Shown: positions 1 through 57,374 of the stretch, piece by piece
Layout: each line of letters starts with the position of its first letter
Position numbering within the stretch: position 1 is the stretch's first letter
Origin: Hemiscyllium ocellatum
Taxonomy: Eukaryota
Direction: 5' to 3'
Length of the DNA: 64,000 nucleotides
NCBI RefSeq assembly: GCF_020745735.1
Contig: NW_026867516.1
Span: 675,144-739,143 of the forward strand
Translations under genes and position numbers: made by a program
Notes under the pieces: model-generated
Databases searched by the model: none
The model's input: the letters and a program-made list of their open reading frames with translations, nothing else
What the model was told of the DNA's origin: nothing

Positions 1-1490
1 CATATGCCTTCTAGTTTTCTTGGACTCCCCTACCCTGGGGAAAAGACCTTAGGTTTCCCCCCCCCCCTATCCATGCCCATTACAAAGGTCTATAAGTTTA
101 CCCCTCAGCCTCTGATGCTCCATGGAAAATGGGAGACCAGAACTGAACGCAGTATTCCAAAATTGGCTTAACCAACATCCTGGACAGCCACAACATGACC
201 TCCCAACTCATCTACTCGATGCTCTGACCAATAAAGGCCATCCTACCAAATGCCTCATTCATTATCCTGTCTACCTGAGACTCCACTTTCAAGGAACTAT
301 GGAACCTGCACTCCAAGGTCTCTTTGTTCTGCAACACTCCCCTTATCTCTGTCAGTCCTGCCTGAATTGCTTGACCAAAATGCAACAACTCGAATTTCTC
401 AAAATTTAATTCCATCTACCACACTTTGGCCCATCCGATCAATTCTAAGTTATAGCAAACCCTCTTTTCTCTCTCATTCCCAAGCTGAAAATCTCCAATC
501 CACACACTCTCCCTACATTCTCATTTTGCTGACCCCAATCCCTGCTGTACCTCATCCTGAATGGTCTGGTTCATGCTGATTAAAAGACCCACACTCGGGG
601 GGGGGTCTAATTGAAACATACATAATCCTGAACAGCCCAGACAGAGTGGATGTCGCGAAGATGTTTCCATTGGTAGGACAGACTCAGACCAGAGGGCAGC
701 GCTTCGAGTAAAGGGAAGTCCTTTTAGAAAGGAGAAACTTCTTCAGCCAGAGAGCGGTGAATCTGTGGAATCTATTTCCATAGAAGGCTGTGGAGGCCAG
801 GTCACTGGGGATATTTAAAACTGAGACAGATAGGTTCTTGAGTATCAAGGGTTAAAGGAGAATGGGGTTGAGAAACCTAGCAGCCACGATTGAATGGGGT
901 GATTAGACCTGATGGACTGAATGGCCTAATTTCTGCTCCTGACTTAGGGCCTCTTGCTGTCCTGGACACAGAGTGAGAGAGTTGGGAGCAAGACTAGGCC
1001 ATTCGGTCTTTCAAGTCAGCACCAGCATTGAACAATTCATAACTGGATATGAATATACCTACAGCTGGGTGGATAGGCTGGGACTTTTTTCACTGGAACA
1101 CATGAGGTTGAGATGTGACCTTAAAAGGAGGCTCATAAAATCATGGAGGGTAGATGAGGTGAACCGCAGGTGTCCTTTCCCTAGGATGGGGGTTTCAAGA
1201 TTAGGGAGCAAATGAGGAAGGTGAGTGAAGAAAGATTTTCAAAAGACTGGAGTAGCGCCTTTTTTTTGAGAGTAGTTTGTGTGTGGAATCAATGTCCAGA
1301 CACGGTGGTGGATGTAGGTACAGTAACAAGGTTTAAAAGACATTTGGATAAGTACGTGAATAGGAAAGGTTCAGAGGGATATGGGCCAAATACACACAGA
1401 TGGGACTAGTTTAGTTTGTGAACACAGCACGGTTTAGTTGGACTGAAGGGTCTGTTTCTGTGTTGTCTGACTCTGGAACTGTTCTAAACT
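1..1490. mobile_element. Nested CR1-type LINE 3' fragments (intron of a minus-strand ZNF unit)
   Basis: ORF 212-415(-) MELNFEKFELLHFG...HSSLKVESQVDR and ORF 1212-1409 match CR1 ORF2 C-terminus. The block is the reverse complement of ~61950-64000. Confidence 0.8.
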
Positions 1491-2758
1491 GGGCTTAAAA
1501 CCATTTTCTTGCCTTCCGCAATAAACATTCACTTCTTTCTTGTTCAAAAATCAGATTAACTCAACCTTGAATTTATTCAAATGACCCCCTAACTGCAGGA
1601 TGACATTCCCATCTCTGAACTCCATTCCTCTTGCTAACACACCACTTGCCATGCTCATTGCCTGCTGCACCTGTCTGACAACTGGCACAGAAGGACGCTG
1701 ATGCCCCTCTGAACATCCATGTATCATTCCTGATGAAGGGCTTGTGCCCGAAACTTCGACTGTCCTACTGCTTGGATGCACCTTGAATGAATCTACCGTC
1801 CCTACCTCTGCTGGCAATGCGTTACAGGCACCTATCACCCTCGGAGTAACGTACTTTCTGTGTGCATCTCCAACATGATGTCCCAACTCCTGAACTCAGC
1901 ATGTGAACCATGAAGGCAAGTGTGCTGAACACCTTCTTCACCCCCCTCTACCAGTGATGTAACTTTCAAGAACAATGAACCTGAACACCTCCATGTCTCT
2001 GTTCTACAACATGACCCAGGGCCCTACCATTACCTGTACAACTCTTGCCCTCCTTTATTTTAGCAAATGCAACCCCTCACTTATATCCATTCCTCTCTCA
2101 TACACACACGCTCTCTCTCAGACATACACACACACCACCCCCTCAAAACTCTCACCCTCTCGCAGACTCATACTCCATCACAATCACACTTTATCAAGCA
2201 GGCACACATGCAAAAACACACTCACAGCGCACAAACACACACACACACACACTTCCCTGAAGGGAGTTTCCCTGAAACGTCAATTTTCCTGCTCCTCGGA
2301 TGCTGCCTGACTTGCTGCTGCACCACACACTCGATCCTAAGCTTATTATCCTCTACTTCTGGACTGCCCCATCCAAAGGAAAATACCATGTTTATTTACC
2401 CTATCCATGCCCCTCATGATGATATAAAAGTGTATAAGGTCACTCCTCAGACTCTGGCAAGCTATGGAAAAAAGTCCCAACCTGAACTTCTGTCTCTCCT
2501 CACCCAGGTAACCAAGACACATACCTGAGGTCCCAAAGTCTGCTCCCTCGCTGGATTCACTCCAGTTGCTACAAGTGAGCCTGCTCCGTCATTCATTAAG
2601 ATCATGGCTGATCTATCCATCGTTTCATCTTCTCCTCCCTGCACTGTCACAAGGAACCCCTTAACTCCCCAACCAGGCCAAATCCCACCCAACTGTATCT
2701 TGAATATACTTAATGAAGCTGCCTCTATTGCTTCCTTAGCCAGTGTATTCCCTAGATT

Positions 2759-2851
2759 TTGATGAAGGGCTTTTGCCCGAAACATCGATTTTCCTACTCT
2801 CCTGATGCTGCCTGACCTGCTGTGCTTTTCCAGCACCACTCTAATCTAGAC
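2759..2851 (+). mobile_element. ~95 bp Penelope-terminus mini-element with hammerhead motif, inserted in a CR1 tail
   Basis: TGATGAAGGGCTTTTGCCCGAAAC at 2760. Flanking direct repeats TATTCCCTAGATT (2746-2758) and TATTCCATAGATT (2852-2864). Confidence 0.75.
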
Positions 2852-3966
2852 TATTCCATAGATTCACGACCCTCTGGGAAAAGCAGTTCCTCCTCATCTC
2901 TTTCTGAAAGCTACTCCCTCTAACCTTGAGGCCTAGTCTCACCCACCAGAAATTACTGGACAGGCTAGGGCTTCATCCCCACAGTGCAATGACATTGGGA
3001 AGATGTTTCCATTGGTAGGAGAGACTAGGACCAGAGGACACAGCTTTAAGAATAAAGGGAAGACCTTTAGGAACAGAGGTAAGCGATGTCTCCTTTTCTG
3101 CCGACAGCGAGGAGCATGGACAATGTACTGGTGACACCAGCGAGCAGGTGCGCTGTTGTTCACACCGAGGAGCAGACACAACGTGCTCTGTGGCGATGCT
3201 GGTGTTATTGACAGATGTTAAATGTTCAAATGCCAAGAGGAGAAATAAAGGGTAGAGCCACAGTTCTTTTTCCCCATGTGGCTCAACATTTTATCGCTTT
3301 TGTCTGGCTGCTCAACATTTTTTTTAATGTCTTTTCCCCAGAATAGGGGTGAGGTTCACAACTACAGGGCATAGGTTTAGGGTGAGAGCAGAAAGATATT
3401 AAAGGTACCTAAGGGGCAACTTTTCCATGCAGAGGATGGTGCACGTATGGAATGAGCTGCGAGAGGAAGTAGTGGAGGCCGTATAATTACAGCATTTAAA
3501 AGGCATCAGGATGGGTATATGAACCAAGTGCTGACAAATGGGACTAGATTAATTTAGGATATCTGGTTGGCATGGACAGGTTGGACCAAATGGGTGTGTT
3601 CATGTGCTGTACATCTTTATGATTCTAAATAATAAAAAGTATATTTTTCCAAATACCAAACTATCTCCATGTTAACAAGGCTTAGTGCACCACATACTTT
3701 ACTAACCATTCTCAACAGGTCCTGCCCCTTCAATAACTGAGGAACATATACATGCTGGTGCATAGTATCCTTCACTAGTATTTACACACTACCCTCAGCA
3801 ATTGCACAAGTAACAGTGAGGGGTAAACAGCACAAGGATTAAAACACAGTGAGGGGTAAACAGCACAAGCGCCAGTAAAAGCAGATGGAAAGTGAGTGTA
3901 AAATGTGACTATGACAGGACAGGCCCCACATTCCTTCCCCTCCGTCCCCCCCACAACCTGCCTCAC

Positions 3967-4218
3967 CTTTCACCTCCCGGGCCCAGTACCTTCCAGGTGG
4001 CCTCATAGTTGACACAGGGGCCGCCCCACGACCAGTAGAACTCCACCACCCAGGCGGCCGACCAGTTCCCAAACAGGCCCTTAACCCCATCCGCCTCCAG
4101 AATGGTCACCGGCTCCTGCCTGCTGTACAGCCGGCCGGTGTGGCCGTGACACAGCAGCTGCGCCAGGAAGGCGGCGGTGACCAGTGACGGGGGTCTGCCC
4201 CGGGCCGCACGGCGCCAT
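3967..4218 (-). pseudogene. Duplicated exon 1 of a quiescin sulfhydryl oxidase (QSOX family, closest to QSOX2); frameshifted, CxxC lost
   Basis: [48 protein letters not shown] matches the QSOX Trx1 N-terminus (normally FYxSWCGHC...TWKALAxDVK). ATG at 4218 (AAAATGGCG), hydrophobic leader, donor AAAG|GTGAGG at 3967/3966, two frameshifts. Confidence 0.8.
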
Positions 4219-4330
4219 TTTCCTAACGGCCGCCGCTTCCCCGCTCGAGCGACTTCTCCTCCCAACCGCCTTCACCCCCGCGTGACGTCTGCACGGGGGG
4301 ATGGGCGGGGCCGGGGGAGCCTCACCGTCA
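4219..4330 (-). promoter_or_regulatory. CpG-rich promoter of the QSOX exon copy
   Basis: CpG-dense, with CRE-like TGACGTC at 4283-4289 and GC box GGGCGGGGC at ~4303-4311. Confidence 0.55.
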
Positions 4331-4891
4331 CCAAGCAACAGCCACCTCGCGCTACAACTGCTCATTCACAAAAACAAACTCTCCTGTCTCGCTCTGCAGC
4401 TGCAGGGGGGACACTGCCACGTTTCGAGGAGCCCTGTCTACATTGGGAAAGCTCACGGCTCCATTTAAACAGATATTCCGACATCTAACGGAACGGCCTC
4501 ATATCTAAAAGAGGCAATCTGCATTTTAAAGGGACATGGACCTTTTCACGGGCTATTTCTGCAAATAAAGAGATTTAATGGACAAGAGCTCGTGGGTCTA
4601 CAGTTAAAATGCTTTAAACAACTGTTTTTTATTTCACTGCCTCCCCAGGATATAGAATTTCTCCCATCTGAAATTGTTTGCCCTGAAAAGAATCCAGCAG
4701 GAATATGATATTGGAACTATCAATAAAATGTCTAATTTGGGTCACCCAGCGTTATTAATGTAAGAATATTATCTCTTCAAGGTTCGATTTGCCCATCAAA
4801 ATTCCTTGAATTTAAGGTGTTCCATTGTTGTTTCAGTTATGATCCATTAAAAAGCAATATCCAGTCTCATCTGAGTGCAGGATCACAAAAT

Positions 4892-5018
4892 GGTAAAAAC
4901 AATGACTGCAGATGCTGGAAACCAGATTCTGGATTAGTGGTGCTGGAAGAGCACAGCAGTTCAGGTAGCATCCAAAGTGTAGAGAAAGCAACGTTTCGGG
5001 CAAAAGTCCTTCATCAGG
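4892..5018 (-). mobile_element. Hammerhead-bearing mini-element (family A)
   Basis: Minus strand CCTGATGAAGGACTTTTGCCCGAAAC. 14-bp direct repeat CAGGATCACAAAAT at 4878-4891 and 5015-5028. Confidence 0.75.
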
Positions 5019-5123
5019 ATCACAAAATAACAACTGTTACCAGCCCACAACTCATGAGTTTCCCATGGACAAAGTTAAAAATCACACAACACCAGATTGG
5101 AATCCAACAGGTTTATTTGGAAG

Positions 5124-5158
5124 CACTAGCTTTCGGAGCGCCGCTCCTTCATCAGGTG
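5124..5158 (-). ncRNA. Minimal type I hammerhead ribozyme, family B (intact core)
   Basis: CAC-CUGAUGA-A-GGAGC-GGC-GCUCC-GAA-AGCU-A-GUG: conserved core, 5-bp stem II, palindromic stem III, 3-bp stem I. Confidence 0.7.
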
Positions 5159-6299
5159 GTTGTGGAGAATTAGATCGTGATCCCGGAATTTGTAGCAAAA
5201 ACAGTCCAGTGTCATGAAAATGTGATACATTAAACAATTTTAGATTAAATCTTCCATCTTTTAGAATGGGTTTCTGCTCTGTGATATGTTAATCCCTGAA
5301 CTTGTTTTTAATTACCTTCTCAAGAATGTCATTTAAATGCAGAGTTTTTCTAATAACAGTGTGAATTCTGTCTGGGTCCCAATGTTGAGTCAGACTGACA
5401 TTTTTCTTAGAAAAGCTCTGCATTTAAATTATACTCTTGAGAAGGTAATTTATAGATTAGGGTGCAAATTAGGGTGGATTGGCTGTGCTAAATTACCTAT
5501 AGTGCCCAGGGATGTGCAAATTAGGGTGGATTATCCATGGGAAATATAGAGTAAGTGGGTAGGTATGGGTGGGATGTTCTTCAGAGGGCCAGTGTGGAAT
5601 GGATGGGCTGAATGGCCTACTTCCACATTTTCGGGATTCTATGACTCCCTAACCACACCCCTAACCAAAGGAGCATTTTATCTGTACCTATCCTGTCAAG
5701 CCCCTTTCAGAATTCTACTGATTTCAATGAGGTCACTTTTGGTTCATAGAGGTATACAACACAGAAACAACTCGTCCATGCCGAGCAGGATTCCGAAACT
5801 AAACTAGTCCCACTCACCTGCATTTGGCCCATATCCCTCTAAACCTTTCCATTCATGTACCCACCCAAATGTCTTTAAAGGTTGTAACTGTACCTGCATC
5901 TACCAGTTCCTCAGCAAGTTCAGTCCACGTGCAAACCATTCTCTGTCAAACCATTACCTGTCAGGTTCCTTTTAAATCTCTCTCCTCTCACCTTAAGGAA
6001 ATATGTCACCTAGCCTCGAGCTCATTTTTAATAACCCCTAGTTTTATGCTAAGGAAGAACCCTTTGCTATTCACCTTACCGCCACTCCTCATGATTTTAT
6101 AAATCTCAATGAGGTCACCCCTCAGCCTCCTTCACTCCAGTGAAAAAAGTCCCAGCCTCTCTAAAAAAGTACATGATCCCTCACCACCCTCCCCTCCCCA
6201 TGTCTCTCTGTTTTACAACATAACCCAGGGCCCTACCATTAACTGTACATGTCCTGCCCTTCCTGGTTTTCACAAAATGCAAGCCCTTGCTTTTATCCA

Positions 6300-6970
6300 T
6301 ACCTCTCTCATACACACGTGCTCTCTCTCAGACACACAGACATACTCCCCCCAACACATTCACAGGCTTATACTCCATCACACTCACAATTTACCTGCAC
6401 GCACACAATCTTACATGCACACACTCACATTCTCTCATGAATGCACACACATATCTCTTTGGGGTGAATTTGTATTGGCAGGATTATTCTTGCAGATACA
6501 TTCAATTTTGCTCAAAGAGCACGTAAACTGCAGGCAGTCAATCCATGTAATATTTTATACATTCCTACTTTGGAAATAGAACCGGTCTGATTCAAGATTG
6601 GGATACTGATAGACTCGAACCTCACACCTTTAAAGCATTGTCTGGACTGAGATGTCACCTATTTTTTATAAAACCTTAAGTCATCTCGAGAATGTGGTTT
6701 AAAAGATTTATATTAATGAACCAAAACCTGCAACCCATTCTAAAAGATGAAAGAGGTAACAGCAATCTCGGCTTGTTCAATATCTCCTATCAGTTGCATG
6801 ACACTGTGATCTTTTGCTATGAAATCTGTGTCTCATTACCCTGGTCCACAGCTACCCGATGAAGGAGCTGCACTCCAAAAGTGGGTGCTTCCAAATAAAT
6901 CTGTGGGCTATAACTGGTGATGTGAGATTTTTAACTCTATCCACCCCACTCCAATACCGGCTCCTCCATA
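6300..6970 (+). mobile_element. Penelope-like element 3' region (family B), degenerate hammerhead at ~6855
   Basis: Reverse complement of 46755-47560 and 58915-59690. CCGATGAAGGAGCTGCACTCCAAAAG. Confidence 0.6.
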
Positions 6971-6979
6971 TTGTATCTT

Positions 6980-9900
6980 GTGAACACAGCCCACACCTCC
7001 CGGTGCTGCCATTACACTTTACAATGTCAATGAAATGATTCAGTCTGCACTCCTGAAAAATTCCCAATTTTTCAAGATACTAGCTACTCATTCACTGCTC
7101 CATTTGATACGCGACATTGGAAACTTAGTGCAGCAGGCTGAAAGAAATGAGCAGCTTTAATACTAAAAACTCTTGGAGTTCAAAGCTTTCAATGAGAATC
7201 TGAGCCCGGTAGTAAGTTCAGGTAACCTTTATTGTGACCCAACTTTGTTACAGCTTCAGAACCACCCCCCCTCCCCCAGCAAAAAAGCGTAGAAAAAGCA
7301 CACACACTCTCCACCCATCCCACCTCACCTTCTTTACTGTTTGTCACCACCAAGCTGTCCTTTTGTAACTGGATCCTTGGTACAGCGTAACTCGAAGGAA
7401 GTATTGCCTCACTCAGCAAAAAAAAATGTCAATTCAGGGTGCAATGCAGCTTCTTGATGAACAACCTGTTAACATCTCCAGGAAGGTGGGAGCAAAATGG
7501 AACATCAAGACATTAACACCAACACACTTCAGTCAAACATTTCTGCTCCCAGTAAGGGCAAAACATCCTGAAACTCCAGTCTTCACCATCAGATTTCTGC
7601 TTTCACAGAAGACGATGAAAGTCATACAGCAGTCGGTCCAATTTGTCTGTGCCAAACAGGTATCCTAAATTAACCTACTCCAATTTGCCTGCATGTGGTC
7701 CATATCCCTCTAAATCCTTTCTATTCATGTGCCCAACCAGAAGAATTTTAAAATTCCCCTCTCACCTCAACCATACGCCCCTCTAGTTTTGGACTTCCCT
7801 ACCCTGGGGTAATGACCTTGGGTATTCACCCTATCCATGCTCCTTATGAATGTCGACATGGTCATCCTTCAGCCTTCGATGTTCCAGGGAAAATATCCCC
7901 AGTGTATTCAGCCTCTCCCTGTAGTTTAAACCCTCCAACTCTGGCTACAGGTTGTCAATCTTTTCTGACCCCTTTCAAAGTTACACAATATCTTTCCAAT
8001 AGCAGGGAGACCAGAAACAAATGCAGTCTCCCAAACATGGCCTGTACAGCTGCAGCATGACCTCCCAACTCCTATACTCAATGGTCTGACCAATAAAGGA
8101 AGCATACCAAATGCCTTCTTCACTATCCTGTCTACCAGTGACTCAATCTACAACGAACTATGAACTTGCACTCCAAGGTCTCTTTGTTCTGCAACACTCC
8201 TCTGAAGTGTGTCAGTCTTTCCTGCATTGCTTGACCAAAATGCAAACCACGCATTTTCATCTGCCACTCCTTGGCCCTTCAGCCCATCCAATCAATTCTA
8301 ATTTATAGTGAACTCTATTTCTCCTCTCTTGTTCCCTAGAATTTGAAAATCTCCATCCCACACACTCTCCCTCTATTCTCAGTTTGCTCAACCTAATCCT
8401 TCCTGTACCACAACCTGAAGGGTCTGGTTCATGCTGGTTAACAGGCCCACACTTTGGGGGGGAGAGGGGTGTTCTAATTGAAACAAACAATACTGAATCC
8501 TGAACAGCCTGAACAGAGTGGACGTTGGGAAGATGTTTCCATTGGTTGGAGAGACTAGAACCAGTGGGCACAGCCTTAGAGTAAAGGAAAGAATTTTCAG
8601 AATAGCGGTGAGTGGTGAATCTATGGAATTCACTGCCACAGAAGGCTGTGGAGGCCTGGTCATTGAGGATATTTAAGACTGAGATGGAGACTTTGAATAT
8701 CAAGGGGATAGAGGGTTACGGGGACAAAGTGAGAGAATGGGGTTGAGAAACCTATCAGCCATATTAAATGGTGGAACAGGCCTGATGGGCTGAATGGCCT
8801 AATTTCTGCTCCTCTGTCCTATGGTCTCTTGCTGTCCTGGACACAGACTGTGAGAATTGGAAGCAGGAATAAGCTATTTGGTCTTTCAAGCCTGCACCAG
8901 CATTCACCAAATCATAACTGGATATGAATCTGCCAACATCTACGTGGATAGGCTGGGACATTTTCGCTGCAACATAGAAGGCTGAGAGTTGACCTTACAG
9001 AAGTTTATAACATCACAAGAGACATAGCCGAGTTGACCGATGGGTATCCTTTCCCTTGGGTGGGGGTTTCAAGATAAGGCAGCCAATTTGAAGGTGAGAG
9101 GAGAAAGCTTTTAAAAAAGCATGAAGGGTACCTTTTGTTTTATACTCAGAGAGTAGTTTGTGTGTGGATGAATATCCAGAGGAAGTGGTGGATGCAGGTA
9201 CAGTAACAATGTTTAAAAGGCATTTGGATAAGTACATGAATAGGAAAGGTTCGGAGGGGCATGGGCCAAACACAGGCAGCTGTGACTAGTTTAGTTTGTG
9301 AATATAGTCAGCATGGACTAGTTGGTCTGAAGGGTCTGTTTCTGTGCTGTATGACTCTGTAACTGTCCTATACTGGTCTTAAAATCATTTTCTTGCCTTT
9401 CCCCATAAACATTCACTTATTTGATGTTCAAAAATCAGATGGATGCAGCCTTGGATATATTCAATGACCCCTAACTGCACGAAGATATCCCCACTTCTGA
9501 CCTCAACTCCTCTTGCTAATATAACACTTGCCTTGCCGATTGCTTGCTGCACCTGTCTGACAACTGGCAGTGACTGGTGTAGAAGGACACTGAGCTCCCT
9601 TTCTACATCCACACATCATTCCTGATGAAGGGCTCGTGCCCGAAACGTTGACTCTTCTGTTCCTTGGATGCTGCCTTACCTGCTGTGCTTTTCCAATGCC
9701 ACACTTTGACTCAGATCTCCAGCATCTGCAGTTCTCCCTTTCACAGCTTCCCAATACATCATGGTTTAAACAATACACCTCCTTTCTGCCTTTTTTTACA
9801 GCAAAGGCTATAACTTCACATTACAGCACTGTATTTACCATGTGTTGGAAATTGTGGTATTCTCTACATCGGGGAGACAGAGCATAAACATGGGAATGGT

Positions 9901-10982
9901 TCGCTGAGCATTGTAGCCGGGTTCGCAGAGGCTGACCATACCTCCCCAGGAGAGAAAGTGAGGACTGCAGATGCTGGAGATCAGAGCTGAAAGTGTGTTG
10001 CTGGAAAAGCGCAGCAAGTCAAGCAGCATCCAAGGAGCAGGAAAGTCGACGTTTCAGGCCTGAGCCCTTCTTCAGGAATGGCCCCCTAAATGCAGGAAGA
10101 TATCCCCACTTCTGAACTCAATTCCTCTTGCTAATATACCACTTGCCTTGCTGATTGCTTGCTGCACCTGTCTGACAACTGGCATTGACTGGTGTTGAAG
10201 GACGCTGAGACCCCTTTGTACATCCACACATCATTCCTGAAGAAGAGCTCAGGCCCGAAACGTCAACTCGCCTGCTCCTTGGATGCTGCATGACCTGCTT
10301 TTCCAGCAACACACTTTCAGCTCATACCTCCCCAGTCACCAATCCATTTTAATTCCTGTTCCTACGCCCTTTCTGACATGACCATCTTTGGTCTCTTGCA
10401 TTGTCACAACAAACTAAACTGCAACCTGGAGGAACGACTCCCCATCTTCCACCTGGGCAGCCTACAGCCCAGAGGACTCAACATAGAGTACCCCATTTTC
10501 AAATAACTTCATTTCCTATCCACAATTCCCTTCTCAGCCTTGACCCTTCCTTTCCACTCCTCTCTGCCACCAACCAGATTCCTTCCTCCTATTGACCCAT
10601 CAGGTCGTACCCTCCACCCGTCTTCACCTATCCCCACCTCACCATTGTGTCCCCAGCACACCCTGTCTCTGTATCTCTCCCTACATCCACCCCCAGTTAT
10701 GAACAAAGGTTACACCCAAGATGTCGACTTCTCCACCTCCTGATGTTGCCTGGCTTGCTGTGTTCTTGCAGCCTCCTGCCTGTCTATTTTTCCGATTATG
10801 ACACAGACCTGGACTAACATTTTCAGAGTCTTTCCCCTCCCGGATTCACTCCCTTTCCTTCAGTTGCTGCAAGTCAACTCCAGAATGAAAAAGAATTGGA
10901 AAAGGGGGTGAGAAAAGAAAATACCGCACTCGCAGATATTGGACAGAGGAAAGAATTTGCAATCTGGGTGAAGCTCAATCTT
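6980..10982 (-). pseudogene. Inverted ZNF-gene unit lacking core promoter and whole zinc-finger exon
   Basis: Exon-1 remnant 10934-10982 with donor mutated to GCGAGT. Intron homologous to 29345-32800. 3' UTR with AATAAA at 7233-7228. No finger codons present. Confidence 0.7.
9850..10790 (+). mobile_element. Penelope-like GIY-YIG/3' fragment interrupted by a 373-bp insertion
   Basis: CTCTACATCGGGGAGACA (LYIGET) at ~9862 and LEERL..F.LG downstream. Paralog at 29500-30035(-). Confidence 0.65.
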
Positions 10983-11074
10983 CATTGTGGCTCGACATTT
11001 TATTGCTTTTGCATTTTGTCTCGCTGCTCAACTTTTGTCCATCTTTTCCCAATGTTGAGAGAGTGTGTGCCCCA

Positions 11075-11330
11075 GTGAGCTGACTGTGGGAAGGAGCTGT
11101 AACCCGTTACACAGATTGAAGAAACGTTACACTATTCGCAGCAGAGAGTAACTGTGCACGTTTCCTGAGTGTGATCACAGTTTCACTTGCTGATCAGAAA
11201 CAAGGAGCCAAAAGGACACCACAACTGTGGAGAAGTCGTGGAAATGTGGGGACTGGGGAAAGGGATACCATTCTCTGTTGGCACCGGAGATTCATGAGCT
11301 CAGTCGCATTGGGAAGAGGCAGTTCTTCAA
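11075..11330 (+). pseudogene. Truncated C2H2 ZNF relic
   Basis: EKSWKCGDWGKGYHSLLAPEIH is a decayed first finger ([17 protein letters not shown]). Paralog at 28660-28920(-). Confidence 0.6.
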
Positions 11331-12769
11331 AACATTATTACAACATTATTTCCCATTGACAAAAATACATTCACACTGCCTGATTACCTTGAACGTATAC
11401 AAGTGCCCTGTCATAACATCTTTATTTATAGCTTTCGACATTTTCCCTATGACATATGGTAAGGGAAATGGTCTGCAGTTTCCCATTCTCTGTCTCCCTT
11501 TTTGAAGAAAAGAGTTTACACAATTTAAAGAAACCTTCCCTGAAACTAATGACGTTGTGGAAAATTAAAACCAATGCGTTAACTATTTCACTGGTTAGTG
11601 TTTCTTTAAGAGTCTTAGATGAAATCTTTCAGGTACCCGGAAGTTGTCAAATCATAGTTCCAACAGTTTACTCAGTACTACTTCCCTGGTAATTGTAATT
11701 TTCTTCAGTTACTTCCTCCCTTTCAATTCCTGATTTACAGCTAGTTCCAGGGTGTTACTTGTATCCTCCCTAGTGAAAACAGATTCAAGCTCTTTTTTAA
11801 TTCATTTGCCATCTCTTTATCCTCCGTTATTGAATCCACAGACTAATTTTCTATAGAACCAACACTTACTTTGTTAACTTTTTAAAAGAAAGCTGAAGAA
11901 ACTTTCCTACCTGTTTTTGTATTTTTGGCTAACTTTCTAACCCTAATTGCTGTGCTACTGCCTGCATTATTTCAGCTGTTTTGCCCCAGCTCTCAACTCG
12001 AGCATCAACCTCTCTGCTTCTTCTATTAAACTTACCTTGATTAAGTGTTGCAAAACACACAAGGACAAGTTTTTCCTCTCCAGAATGTCTTGGTACTTAA
12101 AATGATAAAATTCACTTTGAAATATTGTTCATTCAAACTTTACTAAGCACATCCTACAGATTCAAAATTCAACAATGAGATGCACTTTTGTTACAATCAT
12201 TCAGTTTGAAGAAAAAAACTATTAACTTTGAAGAGAAGTTTGAAAACCCAGTCATTAACTGGAAGAACAGCTCTTTTTTTTGTTTAAAAATGTGAAAACC
12301 TAATCAACAGGAGTAACTTAGCAGAATAGTGTGTATGGCATTAAATTGTAAATCTAGTTTTCTTTCCTTCCCTGCCATAGTTCCCACAAATCTTTATATG
12401 AATCTTGATAGTTCATTCACTTTTTGGGAATAGTCTAAGACAGGCAATATCTTTCTAGGATTCACTTGAATTCTTCTCAGGATTCCAAGAACATCTGGTA
12501 ATTTTATGAGGATGCCTCCATTAGCTTTTGGCTAAGTGAACTTCTAGATTTCGTTTGAGACTTCAAGGTTTAGACTGATCAGTTTGAATGTTGGTTGGAA
12601 AAACCTCTGGTTCCTCATGGCTCTTTGTACTTTTAATCTCACAGCACCTAGTGTGTGAGTGACTAAGCTGCTGCAGAACACAAACTGCTTTCTGTCAGCA
12701 ATGCAAACTCCACGGTGGGTTGTTTGAGTGTTCTTACCATCTGGAAAAATGATGGGGCAATCTCAGTCA

Positions 12770-14091: not shown

Positions 14092-15071
14092 GTGAGTACG
14101 GCACTTTCTTTTTTCACCCCCCCTTTCCATTCTGGGGTTATACTGCTCGGTTACTGACTCTTTATTCCATCCAGTCCATGCTGAACGTGATTCTAAACTA
14201 ACTAGTCTCCACCTGCCTGGAAGTGGTCTCCCATTTCAGGGAGAAATTAGGAATGTATTCCTTTCTTGTTAGTCTATGGAATGCTCCCCCACAGATAGTA
14301 ATGGAGACTGGCTCATGGAATATATTCAAGGCTTAATTGAAGAGAATTTTAAATGGCAGGGATATGAAAGGTTACTGAGAACAGCAGGAAATGGAGTGAA
14401 GGCCAAAGCAGTACTGACATGGTCTTTGGAACAGCAGAGCAAACCCCAGGAGCTGAATGGCTCACTCCTGGTTCAATCTGTGACAAGCTGTGTCCAGGGC
14501 AGGAAGAGGCGAGCATAGATCCATCAGTCAATATTTTTCAGCATTTATGGAGAATTTGGAACATGGGGCAATAATACCTAGTGAGGATGGAGGGAGACTG
14601 TGGTATTTAGATTCAAATTCTGGGGGGGAGGGAGAGCAGAAAGAATGTTCCACAGGAACCAAAACTGTCTGTTTGGAGTTTCTATCCTGCGTAGACAGTG
14701 ATGTCTTCTGTAATCTCCATTTTGCAGGATATGAGAACGGATGGAATTGCAGCCAGTAATCTCAAAACAAGATCTGATCGAGCCAATCGATTCACTGGCA
14801 CAGGAATGTTATCAGCCTTTTGAATCTCACTGGATATTTTATTTGTCTTCTGTCCTGCCTGCTTTGAAAGGTTTCAAACTTCAGTGAGACCGAAGTACAC
14901 AGACCTCAGTGAGCGTGTACCAGTGAACTGACTGTAGGAAGAGCTTTAAGCGGGTACAAAGACTGAAATAGCAACACCTCATTCGCAGCAGCAAGACATA
15001 GAACACGTTCTATTTGTGAGTGGTCCTTCAACTGGTTGTTGACACTAGAGGGCGGTGGGGATTCCCACGTG

Positions 15072-15872
15072 ATGGAGAAACAGTGGAAATGTGGGGACTG
15101 CGGGAAGGAATTCAACTTCCAGAGTTTGCGAAAGCCATCGCCACCATCACACTGGGGAGAGGCCATTCACCTGCTCAGTGTGTGGGAAGGGGTTCACCCA
15201 TTCATCTGCCCTGGTGACCCCCCAGCGGGTCCAGACGGGAGGACAAGGCCTTTCACATGCAACGTGTGTAGGAAGGCGTTCGTTCAGTTATCCACTCTGC
15301 ATAGTCACCAGCGGGTCCACTCTAGGGAGAGGCCTTTCACCTGCTGTGTATGTGGGAAAGCATTCAACCGGTCTTCCAACTTCCAGAGTCACCAGTGGGT
15401 CCACACAAGGGAGAGGCCGTACACCTGCTCTGTCTGATGGAAGGCGTTCGTTCAGTTATGCACCCTGGTTACCCACCAGCGGGTCCACACCAGGGAGAGG
15501 CCGTTCACCTCTGTGTGTGGTAAGCACTTTCAGCGCTTCATCCACCCTGCAGTGTCACCGGGGAGAGACTATTCACCTGCTCCATGTGCGGGGAGGGCTT
15601 CAATGATTCATCTTCTCTGCAGAGACACCACGGGTCCACACCGGGGAGAGGCCGTTTACATGCTCCATTGGCGGGAAGGCATTCATTCAGTCCTCCAACC
15701 TGCAGAGTCACCAACAGGTCCACACCGGGGAGAGACCATTCGCCTGCTCAGTGTGTGGGAAGGGGTTCATTGATTGGTCTTCCCTGCGGAGACACCAGCC
15801 TATCTACAAGTGCGGGAAGGGATTCAGTCAGTCATACCATCTGGTCAGACACCAATCCAGTCACACTGAGTA
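15072..15872 (+). pseudogene. C2H2 zinc-finger pseudogene (~9-10 finger units)
   Basis: [12 protein letters not shown] start and TGERPF linkers spread across three frames. In-frame TGA at 15435-15437. Confidence 0.85.
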
Positions 15873-18539
15873 GCAAACGTTTGGATGCTTTGTGGGTGTT
15901 ACTTGTATTAATATTCAAGAGGGCATACATTGCCTGGTGAGTTGAGCAACTGTTAAGACACACTTACTGATTTGGAACATGGACTGAAGTCAGGAGGTGT
16001 ATATCTGTCATGTTTGACGCTGAAGAAACCTGCCCTGTGTAAAGATTGGCTCCGGTTTCTCCGACCCCACAAGGCTGGCAGGACGATGACGTGGTGTGAG
16101 ATATTGTATTGTAGGTCTCTTTACTAACCCACTCTCAAACTCTTTCTATTAAGTCATTCATAAGTCTTTTCTAACTTGCTCACAGGAGCCCTGTATCTAA
16201 TAATATTGCATTCCCATTTCATTCACCCAACTCTTTCCTGTAACATAGCTTGCTTCATTCATTCATTCACTCACTCACTCACTCACTCACAGTTTTGTAG
16301 TATATTTTACTATTACAAAATAGAATAAGCTAAAACACTCATTACTGCTTTTTCACACCTTCATCCCTTACCAGCTCTTGCTACAAGCAGTGTTTAGGCC
16401 TATTTCTGCATCAAATGCTACCTCTCAATAACTGTCAACATGTTTTCAGAACAATACCTCCCTGCCATCTTATCACCATGAAAGAATACGATATTAATCA
16501 GCCCTTGCCAACCATCTATCAGGACCTGAATAAATACATCAATACATAAATACATCAGTTTCCCTGACTCGCAGCCACTGTCCCCTTTAAGAAGCTGACT
16601 ATCGAGACTGCGCTTCCATGAAATTGCAGGAATGAATGAAACTCTCACTGGCAAATACTAAACAAGTCTCCCAACCCAGCTGCAGTAAACAGTTTAATTC
16701 CGTTTATTCTTTTATTCAGTGCAGGTACAATGGCTAACTTATTTAGAGCACACAGGCCGAGTAATTTTACTAACATTTGCTGACTTAAAAGACAAAAGGA
16801 CTGTCACCTCTTAGTTCTGCAAGCAGACCACACAGACAATCTCAATCCCATCGGGAGTAGCAGCCAGCGTTTGTGTACAATAGATAAAACAATGGGACAC
16901 CATAGTGATGGAGTGTTAATCTCTATAAGAACTATGTGTAAAGAGGCTGCTGTAAGGATGGTATTTCGGGTTTCCATCACCACCTCAAACTTGTACAACT
17001 TGTGGTTGCTGAATAAAGAGGCTGTTTTCACCAGTTGCTGATTTTGGTCGCTATTTGAACACGATCCCACAACGGGAACAGAGAATTCTTGCCCAGTGCT
17101 GAAGGATGGATAAAAAGGAAAACTAAAGTTTCTGACGGCGGCTGACAATCCGAGTGGTGTTTGTGAGAAATGCCCAGAGCTATGTGGAAATTGTCAGGGT
17201 CTGGGTGACCCAACGATATTCCCAGGCTCTGAGCCTCACAACGAGTGGCAAGGTAGAGGACAGAATGTGGACACGGGTTATGACCCCACTATAGAGCTGG
17301 ACAGCACAGAAACTGACCTTTCCATCCAACGTGGCCATGATGGCCAGATATCTGAAATTAATCTCATCCCATTTGCGTGCAATTGACCCATATCTCTCTG
17401 AACTCACCTCTCCATCCAGATGCCTTTGAAATGTTGTAATTGTACCAGTCCCACCACTCCCTCTGGTAACTCATTCTGTACGTGCACCACCTTCTGTGTG
17501 AAAAGGTTGCCACTTAGATCCCCTTCTCTCTCTTTTCCCTCCTTCCCCCCCACCTTAAACCTATGTCCTCTAGTTTTAAACACCAATGAGTCTGATTCCT
17601 TGCTGTACAGCTCTATGACTCTTGTGTAAGTGATAATATATTGGTGGTACACACTTGATGGGCCACAGGGCCTTTTCTGTACTGTATGATTCTGTGATCA
17701 GAAAACTCCCGTTGGGTTCCACAAAAGCATGTCTCTCTGTGCCTTTCTGAAACAGACACCATTTATAACAGATTAATGCAATAATAACCTTAACATGGAA
17801 TTTAAGAACAGACATTCCATTTGAGCACGTTCCTTCTGTGCTGAAACCATTCTGTTGTTTGTGGGAGATCAGGCTGAGGAGCTTTAACTATTTAGGTTTA
17901 GATGTTACGCATATAAGTCTGGAATAACAGTAGATTAGGAATCGTGTTCAGAGAGAATAGTACTCCAAGCCTTTCTAATCCTGTTGTGTTAACGAGAGAG
18001 AGAGGATGTCGCGTCTACAGATCCGACAGAAGAGTTGTGCAGCTTGTTCGGTCAGTTGAGTTGGTTCTGCTCTCAGACAAGACTGGATGTTAATTTTGAT
18101 GGATTCCTATTAAACACTACATCAGAACACTCCAAATCCAAGGAATGTGTCATGAGCAGATCAAAGATAACATTTGGAGAAATAGGTCCTGACATTTCTA
18201 TCTTTGTGTGGGCTGGGTGGGGGGAGAAGTCTTCACATCAGGAAACATGCATGGAATGAGAAACAGTTCATGTCCAAAGTCTGATTTCACTCTTGTTCAG
18301 AACTGAATGGTGCTGGAAAATGCTCGTTTTTATGTCCTTGCCAGAGGGGAGAGTAAGAGCGAGGGTAACATGGTGAGAGTACCTAGAGCCAAAGGCAGAG
18401 ATTGGTAATGATGGTGAAGAAGCGATTGAGGTATCATATAGGTGTTAATGGAAGGGAGAAAGCATCCACACTGCTCAGAACAAAGTCAACAAGACCCACC
18501 TGTGTGGGCAAATGGAACAAAATTGGAGAAGACTAAGCA

Positions 18540-47903: not shown

Positions 47904-49199
47904 CACACACACACACACACACATTGGAGAGGGCAGGGTGAGACTTGTCTTTCACTTTGCAGAAGGTGGGAGGTTCTGGATGCTGTGATTCAGGATAAAC
48001 ACATGCTGGAAGACCTTTGGCTCACAGAGATGGAGTTGGAAGCCAGGCTGCAGACACGTCACGGGGAATGTTAACCGGACACTTTATCCAGGAGATGGTC
48101 ATTCCCCTCTGGACAGAGCCTTCTGGTTAGGTCAGTGGACAGGGTCAGAAGGGTGAGTGTGTGAATCACACAGGTAAAGGGAATCTGAGATTGGGAGGCA
48201 GGGGGAGGAGCTAACTGGCTGAGTGGTGGGGGGCGCTGGGGGTAAGGGGCAGAATATTGACAGGTGATTGTCGTCTTTCTCTGAAGTTAGCAGCAGGAGG
48301 CTAGATGGCATCGGTGTCTGTCTGGCACCAGGTTCAGGAACTGTCGTGCTCAGGACAGGAGAAGTGGGAAAGGGAAGCTGCAGTGGGTGTGGTCCACAAA
48401 TCTCAGGAGGGCAGAGCCTCTGCTGAGGGCGCGTGAGAAGTCAGAAGCTATAAAGACAAAGCAGAACATCAAAGCTCTGGGTGGCATCGTGGCTCAGTGG
48501 TTAGTACTGCTGCCTCACAGGACTGGGTTTGATTCCAGCCACAGGCAACTTTGGCACACTGTCCCCCTTGTGTCTGCGTGGGTTTCCTCCAGGTGCTCCG
48601 GTTTCCTCCCACACTCTAAAGATCTGCAGTTTAGGGTGGATCAGCTGTGCTGAAGTGTCCAGGGATATGCATTTTTGGGTGCGTAAGCCATGGGGAACTG
48701 CAGGGTTGTATGGTAAGTGGGTTGGTTTGATGGGATGCTGTTTGGAAGGTCAGTGTGAGGTGAATGGGCTGAAAGGCCTGCAGGGATTATGTGATTCTAC
48801 TGCTTTAGCCATTTTGTATATTGAGAAATGATTACTGTGGTCCTGGGGAAGGTGGGATTTGTAGTTTCACTGCCATCTGTCCATTCTCCTTCTGTTCCCC
48901 TGTCCATTTTCTCTCTGTTGACACCCTCAACTCCTCACTCCCTCAACCATTCTCTTTCCCCACCACCTGTTATTTCTCGTGCCTCCATCCCTCTTTGATC
49001 GCTGTATCAAGCTCTTCTAAGAAGAGAGAGAGACAGATGGTGATGACTCTACCTGGGAGATGGGGATGCACGAGAAATGGCTGATCTTTAACATTGAGAA
49101 TAGCATGTTCAATTCTATTTTTTTAAAAAAAAGCTGCAGACATCTTTCTGAAACTTGTGTTGAAATTTGTAAAATTTAGCCACAGTTGAGGACAGGCTA

Positions 49200-50560
49200 T
49201 GAGGAGGTTGAGAAACATTGGCACCATCTCGTGCTCCCGCGAGGAGGTTGAGCAATTCATGAACTTCACCAACACATTCCACCCTAACCTTAAATTTATC
49301 TGGACCACCTCTGACACCTCCCTCCCCTTCCTGGACCTCTCCATCTCCATTAATGATGACCGACCTGACACTGACATTTTTTTCTACAAACTCACCGACT
49401 TCCACAGCTACCTGGATTACATCTCTTCCCACCCTACCTCTTGCAAAAACGCCATCCCATATTCCCAATTCCTCCGCCACCGCCGTATCTGCTCCCAAGA
49501 GGACCAGTTCCACCACAAAACACACCAGATGGCCTCCTCCTTTAGAGACCGCAATTTCCCTTCCCACATGGTTAAAGATGCCCTCCAATGCATCTCGTTC
49601 ACATCCCGCACCTCCGCCCTCAGACCCCACCCCTCCAACCGTAACAAGGACAGAATGCTCCTGGTGCTCACCTTCCACCTACCAACCTTCGTATAAACCA
49701 AATCATCCGCCGACATTTCCACCACCTCCAAACAGACCCCACCACCAGGGATATATTTCCCTCCCCACCCCTTTAGGCCTTCCGCAAAGACCGTTCCCTC
49801 CGTGACTACCTGGTCAGGTCCATGCCCCCCTACAACCCACCCTCCCATCCTGGCACCTTTCCCTGCCACCGCAGGAACTGTAAAACCTGTACCCTCACCT
49901 CCATTCAAGGCGCTAAAGGCCCCTTCCACCTCCATCAAAGTTTTACCTGCACATCCACCAATATCATTTATTGTATCCGTTGCTCCCAATGTGGTCTCCT
50001 CTACATTGGGGAGGCTGGGCGCCTCCTAGCAGAGCGCTTTGGGGAACATCTCTGGGACACCCGCACCAATCAACCACACCGCCCTGTGGCCCAACATTTC
50101 AACTCCCCCTCCCACTCTGCCGAGGACATGGAGGTCCTGGGGCTCCTTCACCACCGCTCCCTCACCACCAGATGCCTGGAGGAAAACGCTTCATCTTCCG
50201 CCTCGGAACACTTCAACCCCAGGACATTAATGTGGACTTCAACAGTTTCCTCATTTCCCCTTCAGCCACCTTACTCTAGTTCCAAACTTCCAGGTCAGCA
50301 CTGTCCCCATGACTTGTCCTACCTGCCAATCTTCTTTTCCACCTATCAACTCCACCCTCCTCCCTGACCTATCACCTTCATCCCCTCCCCGACTCACCTA
50401 TTGCACTCTTTGCTACTTTCTCCACACCTCCACCTTCCTCTAGCTTATCTCTCCACCCTTTGGGCTCTCTGCCTTTAGTCCTGATGAAGGGCTTTTGCCC
50501 GAAATGTCGATTTTACTGTTGCCTGAACTGCTGTGCTCTTCCAGCACCAATAATCCAGAA
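49200..50560 (+). mobile_element. 5'-truncated Penelope-like element: RT C-terminus, GIY-YIG endonuclease, terminal hammerhead
   Basis: FHPNLKF..LPFLDL..YLDYISSHP..AIPYSQFLR, CHRRNCKTC, NIIYCIRCSQCGLLYIGE, RFGEH, PVAQHF. AGTC-CTGATGA-A-GGGC-TTTT-GCCC-GAAATGTC-GATT at ~50477-50513. Absent from paralog at ~60215. Confidence 0.9.
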
Positions 50561-50967
50561 AGGGGTGAGTTTCCAATTCTAATATTGTGAAATTGGTTCT
50601 GCCTGTGTAGAAATAGAGTCATGGAGCATGGAATGAAACAGTTTGGTCTGTGTCGACCAGCTATCCTAAATTATTCTATTCCTATTTGCCAACACTTGGC
50701 CCAAACCCCTTTAAACCTTCCTATTCGTACACCCATCCAGATGCCTATTAAAAGTTGTAATTGTACCAGCCTCCACTCCGGCAGCTCATTCAATACATTT
50801 ACCATCCTCTGCGTGAAACAAGTGACCCCTTAGGTCCGTTTTAAACCTTTCCCCACTCACCTTAAACTAATGTCCTCTAGTTCTGGCATTTCCTGAGGCA
50901 AATTAAATGCCACACGTCTTTTCTAATCCTTTGGTCCCTCATCTTTCCCTGAAGATTTTTCCCTCAT

Positions 50968-51005: not shown

Positions 51006-51319
51006 TCCTGCTTCTTGGATACTGCCTGATCTGCTGCGCTTTTCCAGCAACACTTTTTCATCCCTCATCTTTCCCCAATCAACCTAAACCTATGTCCTCC
51101 AGTTTGTGACTCCCCTAACCGAGGGAAAAGATATACAAAAGTTGAGCAGCCAGCCAAAATGCAAAAGGAATACAATGTCAAGCCACCGGGGGGTGGGGGG
51201 GGCGGGGGTGGAGGGGGTGGAGGGAAGGGGAAGGAGAGAATTGTGGTTCTACTTTTTTTTCCCTCCGATCGGCATTTGGACACTTCAAACCTGTCAGTAA
51301 CATAAGCATCTCTGAAGAG

Positions 51320-51613
51320 CATAATGCGCATGCCCATCGGTGTCAGCAAGCACTGCGCATGTCCGCTGGTGTCAGCAAAAGACTGTGCACGCTCCTGGCT
51401 GTACGCACAAACAACTCATGACCTACTTTTGATGGACCAATAGGGAACACGGGAGGACCGGAAGGTGTCTAGTCCTCCTGCCAATCAGAGCACCACTATT
51501 GTCTGAATGCGGAAGTTGGACAATGACCTTCTGAAGCAGCTGCTGCTCCTGTCTCTCTGAATGAAGATTAAGCTTTACCCCAAACTTCAACTTTCTTCCT
51601 CTGTCCAACATCT
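51320..51613 (+). promoter_or_regulatory. Promoter and exon 1 of the 57-kb ZNF gene
   Basis: Same motif set as the 29-kb promoter. Donor at 51613/51614. Acceptor at 56983. Confidence 0.7.
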
Positions 51614-54900: not shown

Positions 54901-57374
54901 CCAGACACTGAGTGTAGTCATAGCAGGGAATAAAACAAGAAATGTGAACCAAAATTAGAAATAAGTAGGTGCTTGTGCTTAATATTGTTCAATAGGGAGT
55001 AATCCAGAAATACTACTCTCCCAGGATTCCTACAGTGCCTTATTTGAGGAATTCTCTCACCCTTACATCGAGCTATTAGTACCTATGATGACTTACAACA
55101 ATATTTATACCAACAGAACAAAAAGTATCTGTTGTCAAATTGACATAGAGATATACAGCATGGAAACAGACTTTTTCTCTCTGTCATGCACACACACACA
55201 TGCACAAGTCCATGGGGGTGAATTTGTGTTTGCAGAATGATATTTGCATATGCATTCTATTTTCCACAATCTGCAGACAGTTAATACATCTAATATTTTG
55301 TAAATTTCACATTGGAAATAGAACCAGTCTGACTGGAGACTGGGATACAGATTCTGACCTCACGCCTTTAATGCATTATTTGAGCTGAGGTGTCTCCTTT
55401 TGTTATAAAGCTTCAAAGTTATCCTGGGAAGGTGCCTTACAGGAAGTTCTGGGATTTACATATTAATGATATCTGCAATCCATTGTAAAAGATGAAAGAC
55501 TTAATGATCCAGGGTTGTGAATATATCATTTCAATACCAGGACACTGTAATGTTTTCCCAGAAATTCTGTGTCTTATGATCTTACTCCACAACCACTTGA
55601 TGAAGGAGCAGCGCTCCAAACGCTAGTGCTTCCAAATAAACCCGTTGGACAATAACCTGGTGTTGTGTGATTTTTAACTTTGTCCAGGTAAGGTTTGATT
55701 GGCCAGGCCAAATTACCCATAGTGCCCAGGGATGTGCAGGTTAGATGTATTAGTCAAGGGGTAAATGTAGAGTAATAGGAGGAGGGGAATGGGTGTGGTG
55801 AGGTTGCCATTCGGAGGTTGGTGTGGACTTGTTAGAACAGTGAGGGTTCTCTGAAGTGAAGGGATTTTTGTTCACTGTTCAGGAAGGGAGGTGGGGGGGA
55901 GAGGGGAGAAGCAGCGTGGGGGGAGGAGGGAGGAAATGGTGTATGGGAGGAGAGGGGAGGGGTGGGTGGAGTGCGGGGGGAGGAAATTTGTTTACTTGTA
56001 GCAACTGGAGTGAACCCAGGGAGGGAGCAGACTCTGCAAACTCAGATATGTGCCTTAATTACCCGGGTAAGGAGGGTTGGAAGGATAGGGTGTTGCTGTT
56101 TTCCCTAGTGCGTCAGAGTGTGAGGGGTAACCTGATAGACTTTTTTAAAATCATGAGGGGCATGGATTGGGTAAATAGACGAGGTCTTTTCCTTGGGATG
56201 GGGAGTCCAGAACTCGAGGGTAATAGATTTAAGGTGAGGGCAGGGGGAGGGAGACTGGAAAGAGATCTAAGGGGCAACATTTTCACGCAGAGGATGGTGC
56301 ATGTATGGAATGAGCTGCCAAAGGAAGTGGTGAAGGCTGGTGCAATGACAACATTTAAAAGTCATCAGCATGAGTGTGTGAAAAGGAAGGGCTCAAAGGG
56401 ATATGGGCAAAGCGCTGGCAAATGGGACGAGATTAATTTTGGATATCTGGTTGGACACAGAAGAATTTGACCGAAATGTCTGTTTCTGTGCTGTACATCT
56501 CGATGACTCTGGCTTTCCACGAATGTTTGTCATGTCTGTATGTTCAGTTTCTGTGGTGGCGGTATCAATGCCTTGATGGTTCATTTTGCTTTCTCTCTCA
56601 CCCCCATCAGTTCCTGGGAATGTTAACCATTTTGTGTTTGGTTGTTCTTCAAGAACCTGCATTGCAGGCTCACCCCGAATTGACATTTTTTTGCTTCCCA
56701 AAATCAGACCTGCTCACTCTCAGCAATATCCCAGTGTTGTGAAAGATATTAAATTTCAGGTGGAGTTATCCAAAACTCAGATGTCAGTCTTGACGTTTTT
56801 GCTTTTCTGCCCCTATCAGATCCTGAATCAACACCTTCAGGAGAATGAGTTAGAGCGAAGGGCGGGAGAGAGAGAGAGAGGGATAGTGCTTTCAATTTTG
56901 TGGAATAACAACACAAACAAATTGCTTGTTCTGAATTTTTATTCTGGACTGACAGGAATGAATTTTCTAATCTCTTTTTACAGAGTATTTGAAGATCTGA
57001 AGACGGAAGTTTCAAAATCAACAGATGAAGGACTTATGCCCAAAATGTCGACTCTCCTGCTCTTCAGGTGCTGCCTGACCTGCTGTGCTTTTTCAGCGTC
57101 GCACTTTTCAACACTGACTCTCCAGCGTCTGCAGTCCTCACTTTGACGTCAATGTCTGACAGTCACTCAATCCATCCGGACAGCAACAATCGTTGACTGA
57201 TTCTGTGAGAAGGAGCAAAGCTTTTTGGTTCCTGTTTCAGTCCGTTTTCAGCATCAGTGGGACTGGATGAGGGACCCTACTGTTGGAGTGCACTGAGTGT
57301 GGAGCCTGAAACAGTTATAAGGCCTGGGAAGAGGAATTCACGGAGGGGAGGAGCTCTACACGTGTTGTGTGTGG

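Follow-up and report, generated by a model that had tools for sequence, protein, structure and literature searches.

All 3'-truncated duplicates that were examined in human segmental duplications are transcribed, and fusion to downstream exons is common (Dougherty et al. 2018, PMC6169893). In the NOTCH2NL-NBPF and ARHGAP11B long isoforms described in that study, the parental promoter and 5' exon(s) persist in the partial duplicate, and run-on transcripts are spliced to downstream exons, often those of an amplified gene family, with the fused exons being mostly non-coding. HYDIN2 is a new gene formed by incomplete duplication and fusion, in which a gene body that had lost its promoter by rearrangement is reported to have acquired a foreign promoter together with a first exon (Dougherty et al. 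2017, PMC5345166). The fusion of a partial duplicate to downstream sequence is a known kind of event. Here, a locus of the shark Hemiscyllium ocellatum is described that lies within a 64,000-nucleotide stretch of contig NW_026867516.1 (hereafter the window) and that holds a fragment of the sulfhydryl oxidase gene QSOX2 upstream of a C2H2 zinc-finger (ZNF) unit devoid of its own promoter, referred to as unit E. No paper on QSOX2 fragments in sharks was found in the literature.

The shark locus resembles the human cases in its layout but differs in that the duplicate contains exon 1 only, which is itself non-coding, in that many copies exist within a shark ZNF cluster, and in that transcription is inferred. 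The roles seen in HYDIN2 appear reversed: there the duplicate is the promoter-less body, whereas here the duplicate would be the promoter donor, with the ZNF promoter lost by local replacement. The fragment appears to belong to a family that spread together with the C2H2 ZNF cluster in hemiscylliid sharks. On balance, it seems probable, by a modest measure, that this truncated QSOX2 duplicate seeds chimeric, mostly non-coding transcripts into unit E.

A truncated QSOX2 duplicate

The module at 3628-4927 is a 3'-truncated QSOX2 duplicate in which a CpG-island promoter and a 5' leader precede exon 1, with ~340 bp that presumably stem from intron 1 (Table 1). Frame 2 of the minus strand from 4217 to 3967 encodes a signal-peptide-like segment followed by the start of a thioredoxin (Trx) domain. 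The top PDB matches of this exon peptide are seven QSOX1 chain sequences, with E-values of 4e-11 to 1e-8, and non-QSOX thioredoxin-fold proteins score 1e-4 or worse (phmmer), which bears out the original prediction of a QSOX exon-1 copy running from 4218 to 3967. The Pfam Thioredoxin model alone yields 13 bits, which is under threshold, as expected because the exon covers one third of the domain; the exon identity therefore rests on the PDB and QSOX2 comparisons. A HMMER search of 1.8 billion representatives returned 116 matches, mainly QSOX N-termini, with two near-identical short proteins on top.

The two lesions that had been predicted, a changed active site and a frameshift, were both recovered. 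The active-site motif of the exon copy reads WGGPC, compared to WCGHC in the QSOX2 parent proteins. The ATG at 4218 and an upstream ATG at 4365 share one frame, which ends at a stop at 4083, and the thioredoxin frame has a stop at ~4274 without a later ATG. Compared to the closest model (P0119, 97.5% identical over 79 residues), one additional C is present in GGCC(C)GGGG just 3' of the ATG. A sequencing error behind WGGPC was rejected, as the motif is common to 21/21 models of paralogous copies from three assemblies. The exon end is undamaged: the donor AAAG/GTGAGG at 3967/3966 (the slash marks the splice site throughout) coincides with the QSOX exon 1/2 boundary, after ...DVK.

In agreement with the original prediction, tblastn with four full-length QSOX proteins found no QSOX exon besides exon 1 on either strand of the 64 kb, and the same searches left PF18108, PF18371 and PF04777 (the second Trx, helix-rich and Erv/ALR flavin adenine dinucleotide (FAD) domains) unmatched in the window. 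The DNA 3' of the exon extends for 3.97 kb within the window and is made of ZNF-unit sequence. Nor was a second copy of the 1.3-kb QSOX2 module (~3628-4927) found in the window by blastn or tblastn. A functional QSOX has the CxxC motif (WCGHC) and an open reading frame (ORF) from the start codon through exon 1; here the motif is absent and the ORF is broken. The fragment at ~3628-4927 is dead as an enzyme gene: GGPC replaces CGHC in every copy, a frameshift is present in this one and all later exons are missing.

Table 1 Features of the QSOX2 module and of ZNF unit E, listed in the direction of the minus strand
Feature	Position	Strand	Remarks
Putative QSOX2-derived CpG-island promoter and 5' leader	4219..4500	-	GC 0.61, CpG observed/expected (o/e) 0.92; upstream ATG 4365
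Dead QSOX2 exon 1 (start codon, signal-peptide remnant, beginning of Trx1)	3967..4218	-	WGGPC where QSOX has WCGHC
Splice donor GTGAGG	3961..3966	-	Intact, follows AAAG; marks the ancestral exon 1/2 boundary
Presumed QSOX2 intron 1 remnant	3628..3960	-	Single-copy in the window, CpG o/e 0.13; QSOX2 origin inferred from position
Interspersed repeat at the upstream edge of unit E	3326..3626		Many copies in the window
Retained upstream flank of unit E	3078..3397	-	Homology stops <=5 bp from the expected first CCAAT box
Candidate acceptor A, cag/AAAAGG	3085..3099	-	Exon start 3097; homologue used by C. plagiosum isoform X3 (P0126)
Replacement DNA in place of the CCAAT/ETS core, of exon 1 and of ~270 bp at the intron start	1780..3077	-	Repeat pieces
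Intron segments I1/I2 of unit E	131..1779	-	76.8% over 1715 bp to unit D (8005-9671)
Candidate acceptor B, ctctctcactctgtgtccag/GACAGC	940..965	-	Exon start 961; 5' border of a repeat
Lost I2-exon acceptor (C. plagiosum isoform X1, P0125)	528..547	-	AG to GG in unit E; intact in units A-D

Origin of the fragment

A search with the N-terminus of lamprey QSOX supplied the candidates for the parent gene, namely QSOX2 of H. ocellatum, Chiloscyllium punctatum, C. plagiosum and Stegostoma, and skate QSOX1. The exon peptide is 73-78% identical to hemiscylliid QSOX2, including the MAPCG start and the signal peptide, but only 40% identical to skate QSOX1, and the fragment is therefore derived from QSOX2, the sharks' own gene. 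QSOX1 as a parent was rejected on these same values. The original prediction, which left the kind of QSOX unspecified, is thus retained and refined. At the four sites that separate hemiscylliid from Stegostoma QSOX2, the pseudo-exon has the hemiscylliid residue, which would fit an origin on the hemiscylliid stem.

The hemiscylliid QSOX2 proteins (P0162 of H. ocellatum, P0160 of C. punctatum and P0158 of C. plagiosum) share with the fragment the first 55 Trx1 residues at the identity given above and the same exon-1 end. They differ in their WCGHC motif and in the full Trx-Trx-HRR-Erv architecture (HRR, the helix-rich domain; PF00085, PF18108, PF18371, PF04777), whereas the window copy has nothing past exon 1. 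H. ocellatum itself thus holds an intact QSOX2 with WCGHC (P0162). Two of these proteins carry unexpected names at NCBI, 'LIM/homeobox protein Lhx3 isoform X4' for P0158 and 'isoform X2' for P0162, yet contain QSOX Pfam domains; the QSOX set is complete in P0162, whereas LIM and homeobox domains accompany the Trx domains in P0158. Either misnaming or read-through from QSOX2 to LHX3 seems to lie behind these two models.

The promoter-less ZNF unit E

Alignment of the ZNF units in the window gives a common order of elements: an upstream flank; a core with two CCAAT boxes and ETS-like CCGGAAG or GCGGAAGT sites; a non-coding exon 1 that ends in ...CATCTG/GTGAGT; the intron segments I1/I2; and the terminal exon. 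Compared to a complete unit (such as A and C), the flank and I1/I2 are present in unit E, and the promoter core with both CCAAT boxes and the ETS-like sites is absent, as are exon 1 and its donor. The flank, from 3397 to 3078, aligns with the flanks of unit A (51.06-51.44 kb) and unit B (60.85-61.1 kb), with blastn matches of 71-79% to 51067-51411 and 60904-61059. Intron homology is at its strongest from 1779 to 131, where units A, B, C and D match at 77-79% over stretches of 0.8-1.7 kb, and smaller intron-homology pieces lie between 2995 and 2344. The earlier view that unit E keeps its upstream flank and intron accordingly holds.

The replacement of the core and exon 1 by repeats was confirmed as well, although the repeats, which had been called CR1, are multi-copy and interspersed with their CR1 class unconfirmed. 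The replaced segment also holds a short interspersed element (SINE)-like sequence (2760-2842) and two segments that occur deeper in the unit A intron. Copies of the repeat at the upstream edge of unit E also sit just ahead of the unit A and unit B flanks, in an equivalent position (50656-50885 and 60319-60552). The QSOX2 donor lies ~570 bp upstream of the unit E flank on the same strand, close to the ~600 bp first estimated.

No minus-strand ZNF terminal exon occurs in the 64-kb window. All ZNF terminal exons that are present lie on the plus strand, at 15.0-15.9 kb (degraded), 34.1-35.1, 45.0-45.9 and 57.3-58.1 kb. From the spacing in unit A, the terminal-exon acceptor of unit E would be expected ~3.6 kb left of the window start, with the exon ~3.6-4.8 kb left of it.

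Other ZNF sequences in the window are damaged too. The degraded terminal exon (15015-15888, plus strand) retains a 171-aa ORF and frameshifted finger remnants, and its array is readable piecemeal across frames. Unit D (11.4 to 7.8 kb, minus strand) is without the CCAAT/ETS core; what remains is I1/I2 and the 3' half of exon 1, donor included. No ZNF exon lies downstream of it before the QSOX2 module.

Paralogous copies and their splice patterns

The dead exon is carried by 21 NCBI models (P0001, P0002 and P0117-P0135) from H. ocellatum, C. plagiosum and C. punctatum, at 86-97.5% identity. All of them have WGGPC, and none reaches a second QSOX exon. Directly after GGE(R), at the same donor, 20/21 models switch to one of 14 different non-empty short tails or to an immediate stop; the exception is P0132 (isoform X7), in which the splice comes earlier, after ...SSQEP. 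Seven isoforms are annotated at a single C. plagiosum locus; in the NCBI pipeline, such a number normally reflects transcript evidence.

NCBI names the copies 'sulfhydryl oxidase 1-like' or '2-like' (e.g. XP_060677569.1, XP_043562411.1 and XP_072411751.1), and the two names are interchangeable guesses. The models share the dead exon, its donor and the upstream leader with the window copy but have kept an in-frame ATG, with annotated proteins of 86-192 aa, whereas the window copy has neither an in-frame ATG nor a matching model.

When the model tails were mapped onto the ZNF units of the window, matches in the sense orientation were found at several places: the promoter edge and core (P0126, P0129), the I1/I2 repeat border (P0001), an exon in I2 (P0125), and an acceptor ~400 bp upstream of the ZNF ATG (P0122 of C. 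punctatum, and P0127). The last of these tails, VFEDLKTEVSKSTD or VIENLKSKVSKTTD, begins at the acceptor ttttacag/AG, ~400 bp before the gccATGG of the ZNF ORF, and this acceptor is kept in units A, H and C of the window. The two models that use it come from C. plagiosum (XP_043538291.1) and C. punctatum (P0122), so that two sister species have models in which the dead QSOX2 exon is joined to the lead-in of a ZNF ORF.

Two of the acceptor sites used by the models are intact in unit E. The tail RKGVRPTFDGPIK... starts at the ZNF-promoter-edge acceptor, which is retained at 3097 with a polypyrimidine tract that is moderate only; units A, B and C each match the P0126 tail at the equivalent site. 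The conserved I1/I2-border acceptor, where the TARDHKT tail of C. plagiosum XP_043562411.1 starts, is retained at 961. Since the promoter-edge acceptor is homologous, the arrangement of a QSOX2 module followed by a ZNF flank predates the split of the genera. The window copy is derived, with the ZNF promoter lost later.

Two further splice targets were rejected for this locus. The acceptor of the I2 exon has mutated from AG to GG, and the repeat homologous to the tail exon of the P0117-P0119 type lies on the opposite strand in unit E.

The CpG-island promoter

The CpG o/e ratio is 0.92 at 4219-4500 and 0.63 at 3967-4218, compared to 0.26 in the surrounding 10 kb; the native ZNF promoters of the window have values of 0.5-0.6. 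The CpG island, the ATG and the intact GTGAGG donor are thus all present as the original prediction had them. Putative motifs within 4219-4500, as read from the sequence, include a GC box, a cAMP response element (CRE)-like TGACGTCT and a CCAAT box. The 5' leader is translated in the NCBI models P0117, P0135 and P0001, with the first 30 leader codons identical to the window.

The pseudo-exon differs from QSOX2 by 22-27% at the amino-acid level. Because a methylated island would lose most of its CpGs over such a divergence, the promoter of the QSOX2-fragment family has probably been kept unmethylated in the germ line.

On the plus strand at 4641..4760, 430 bp upstream of the QSOX2 promoter and antisense to the QSOX exon, lies a piece that resembles an exon and begins at a strong acceptor, ctccccag/GAT. 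Its homologue is the tail of 34 residues in H. ocellatum XP_060677940.1; given the antisense placement here, the locus of that model must be arranged differently, by an inversion or with convergent modules.

Proposed mechanism and alternative explanations

The anatomy of the fragment, its parent gene, its lesions and a family with annotated splice patterns in three species are established; the activity of the window copy and its choice of acceptor are proposed. The QSOX2-derived promoter would still fire, and its transcripts would use the conserved exon-1 donor at 3967. This donor would then be joined to whichever acceptor lies downstream in the same-strand unit E, the candidates within the window being 3097 and 961 and a further one being that of the ZNF terminal exon, ~3.6 kb past the left edge. 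The predicted products would be chimeric and mostly non-coding, with an upstream ORF of 45 or 94 codons. As for the captured promoter and first exon of the original prediction, an orphan, enzyme-dead fragment in front of a promoter-less unit is what the locus contains, and it might plausibly serve a ZNF gene as its first exon.

Several points weigh against activity of the window copy. No protein model is identical to it, the best reaching 97.5%, and a 5.8-billion-protein set yielded NCBI models only, with no protein from run assemblies (Logan) that contains the exon. Models built from QSOX protein homology plus ab initio extension would look alike. The tails of the H. ocellatum models P0117-P0119 and P0135 come from a repeat that is wrongly oriented here, and the annotated H. 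ocellatum loci are therefore not built exactly like the window locus. The CpG argument concerns the history of the family, and the window copy may be a recent duplicate of an active one and could have been silenced since. Lastly, minus-strand AATAAA signals at 2396, 2059 and 1577 could end unspliced transcripts early. The copy may be an inert relic, silent and with a first-exon look that is merely inherited, in front of a unit E that is a dead ZNF pseudogene. The broken ORF, the lack of a model or transcript for this copy, the mutilation of both neighbouring units D and E and the loss of one homologous acceptor all fit such a relic, which we nonetheless consider unlikely, if by no means far-fetched: the CpG island has been kept along with an intact donor, three species have annotated spliced genes among the paralogues that share this promoter, and transcription is the general rule for 3'-truncated duplicates with a retained promoter (PMC6169893).

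At the other extreme, the QSOX2 promoter and exon 1 could have functionally replaced the native ones, as the sole promoter and 5' exon of a protein-making ZNF gene with an intact terminal exon ~4 kb left of the window. Orientation and order fit, unit E is without its own promoter and exon 1, and the upstream ORF stops within exon 1, which would permit re-initiation downstream; the P0122 and P0127 models, in two sister species, splice straight onto the acceptor upstream of a ZNF ORF. The ZNF exon that this requires is, however, outside the window and unseen, and decay is common here, as in unit D with its lost ZNF exon and in the degraded exon at 15.0-15.9 kb. The nearer intact acceptors at 3097 and 961 would compete, and NCBI marks the short upstream ORF as coding in these models, which yield no ZNF protein. 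Such a replacement is therefore fairly improbable for this locus. Quite improbable is its extension to a whole subfamily of hemiscylliid C2H2 ZNF genes, in which a captured QSOX2 CpG-island promoter landed upstream of one ZNF unit, was co-amplified with it as a composite and became the sole driver of still-functional ZNF genes where the native promoter was lost. That the fragment is instead a true QSOX paralogue, with its other exons left of the window and its lesions due to assembly errors, is scarcely credible. The downstream view is only 3.97 kb and first introns can be long, but WGGPC occurs in all 21 models from three independent assemblies, no model reaches the second QSOX exon, the downstream DNA consists of ZNF-unit flank and intron, and an intact WCGHC QSOX2 (P0162) is present in the same species. 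The seeding of chimeric, mostly non-coding transcripts into unit E is thus the reading that we favor.

Other repeats in the window

The SINE-like element of unit E recurs at 4928-5016, 57024-57147 and >15 other sites, in both orientations. Its CTGATGA...GAAAC motif is reminiscent of a hammerhead-ribozyme core; an Rfam search of positions 1-12000 found no family at the gathering score. Each ZNF terminal exon has one copy within its 5' leader, and sequence of this copy is translated as part of the P0127 and P0122 tails. Just upstream of unit A, the region 49100-50400 (plus strand) is GC-skewed with overlapping long ORFs on both strands and looks like a coding remnant of the long interspersed element (LINE) type.

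Implications for shark ZNF clusters

For annotation, the 'sulfhydryl oxidase 1-like' and '2-like' entries in three shark genomes are to be read not as enzymes but as dead first exons to which repeat or ZNF-unit sequence has been joined. The locus would be a clear non-mammalian case in which an expanding gene family receives the promoter and first exon of a partial gene duplicate. If QSOX2-driven transcripts do reach intact ZNF exons, a tandem ZNF cluster can switch its regulation wholesale, from a CCAAT/ETS promoter to a housekeeping CpG island, with the coding exon unchanged.

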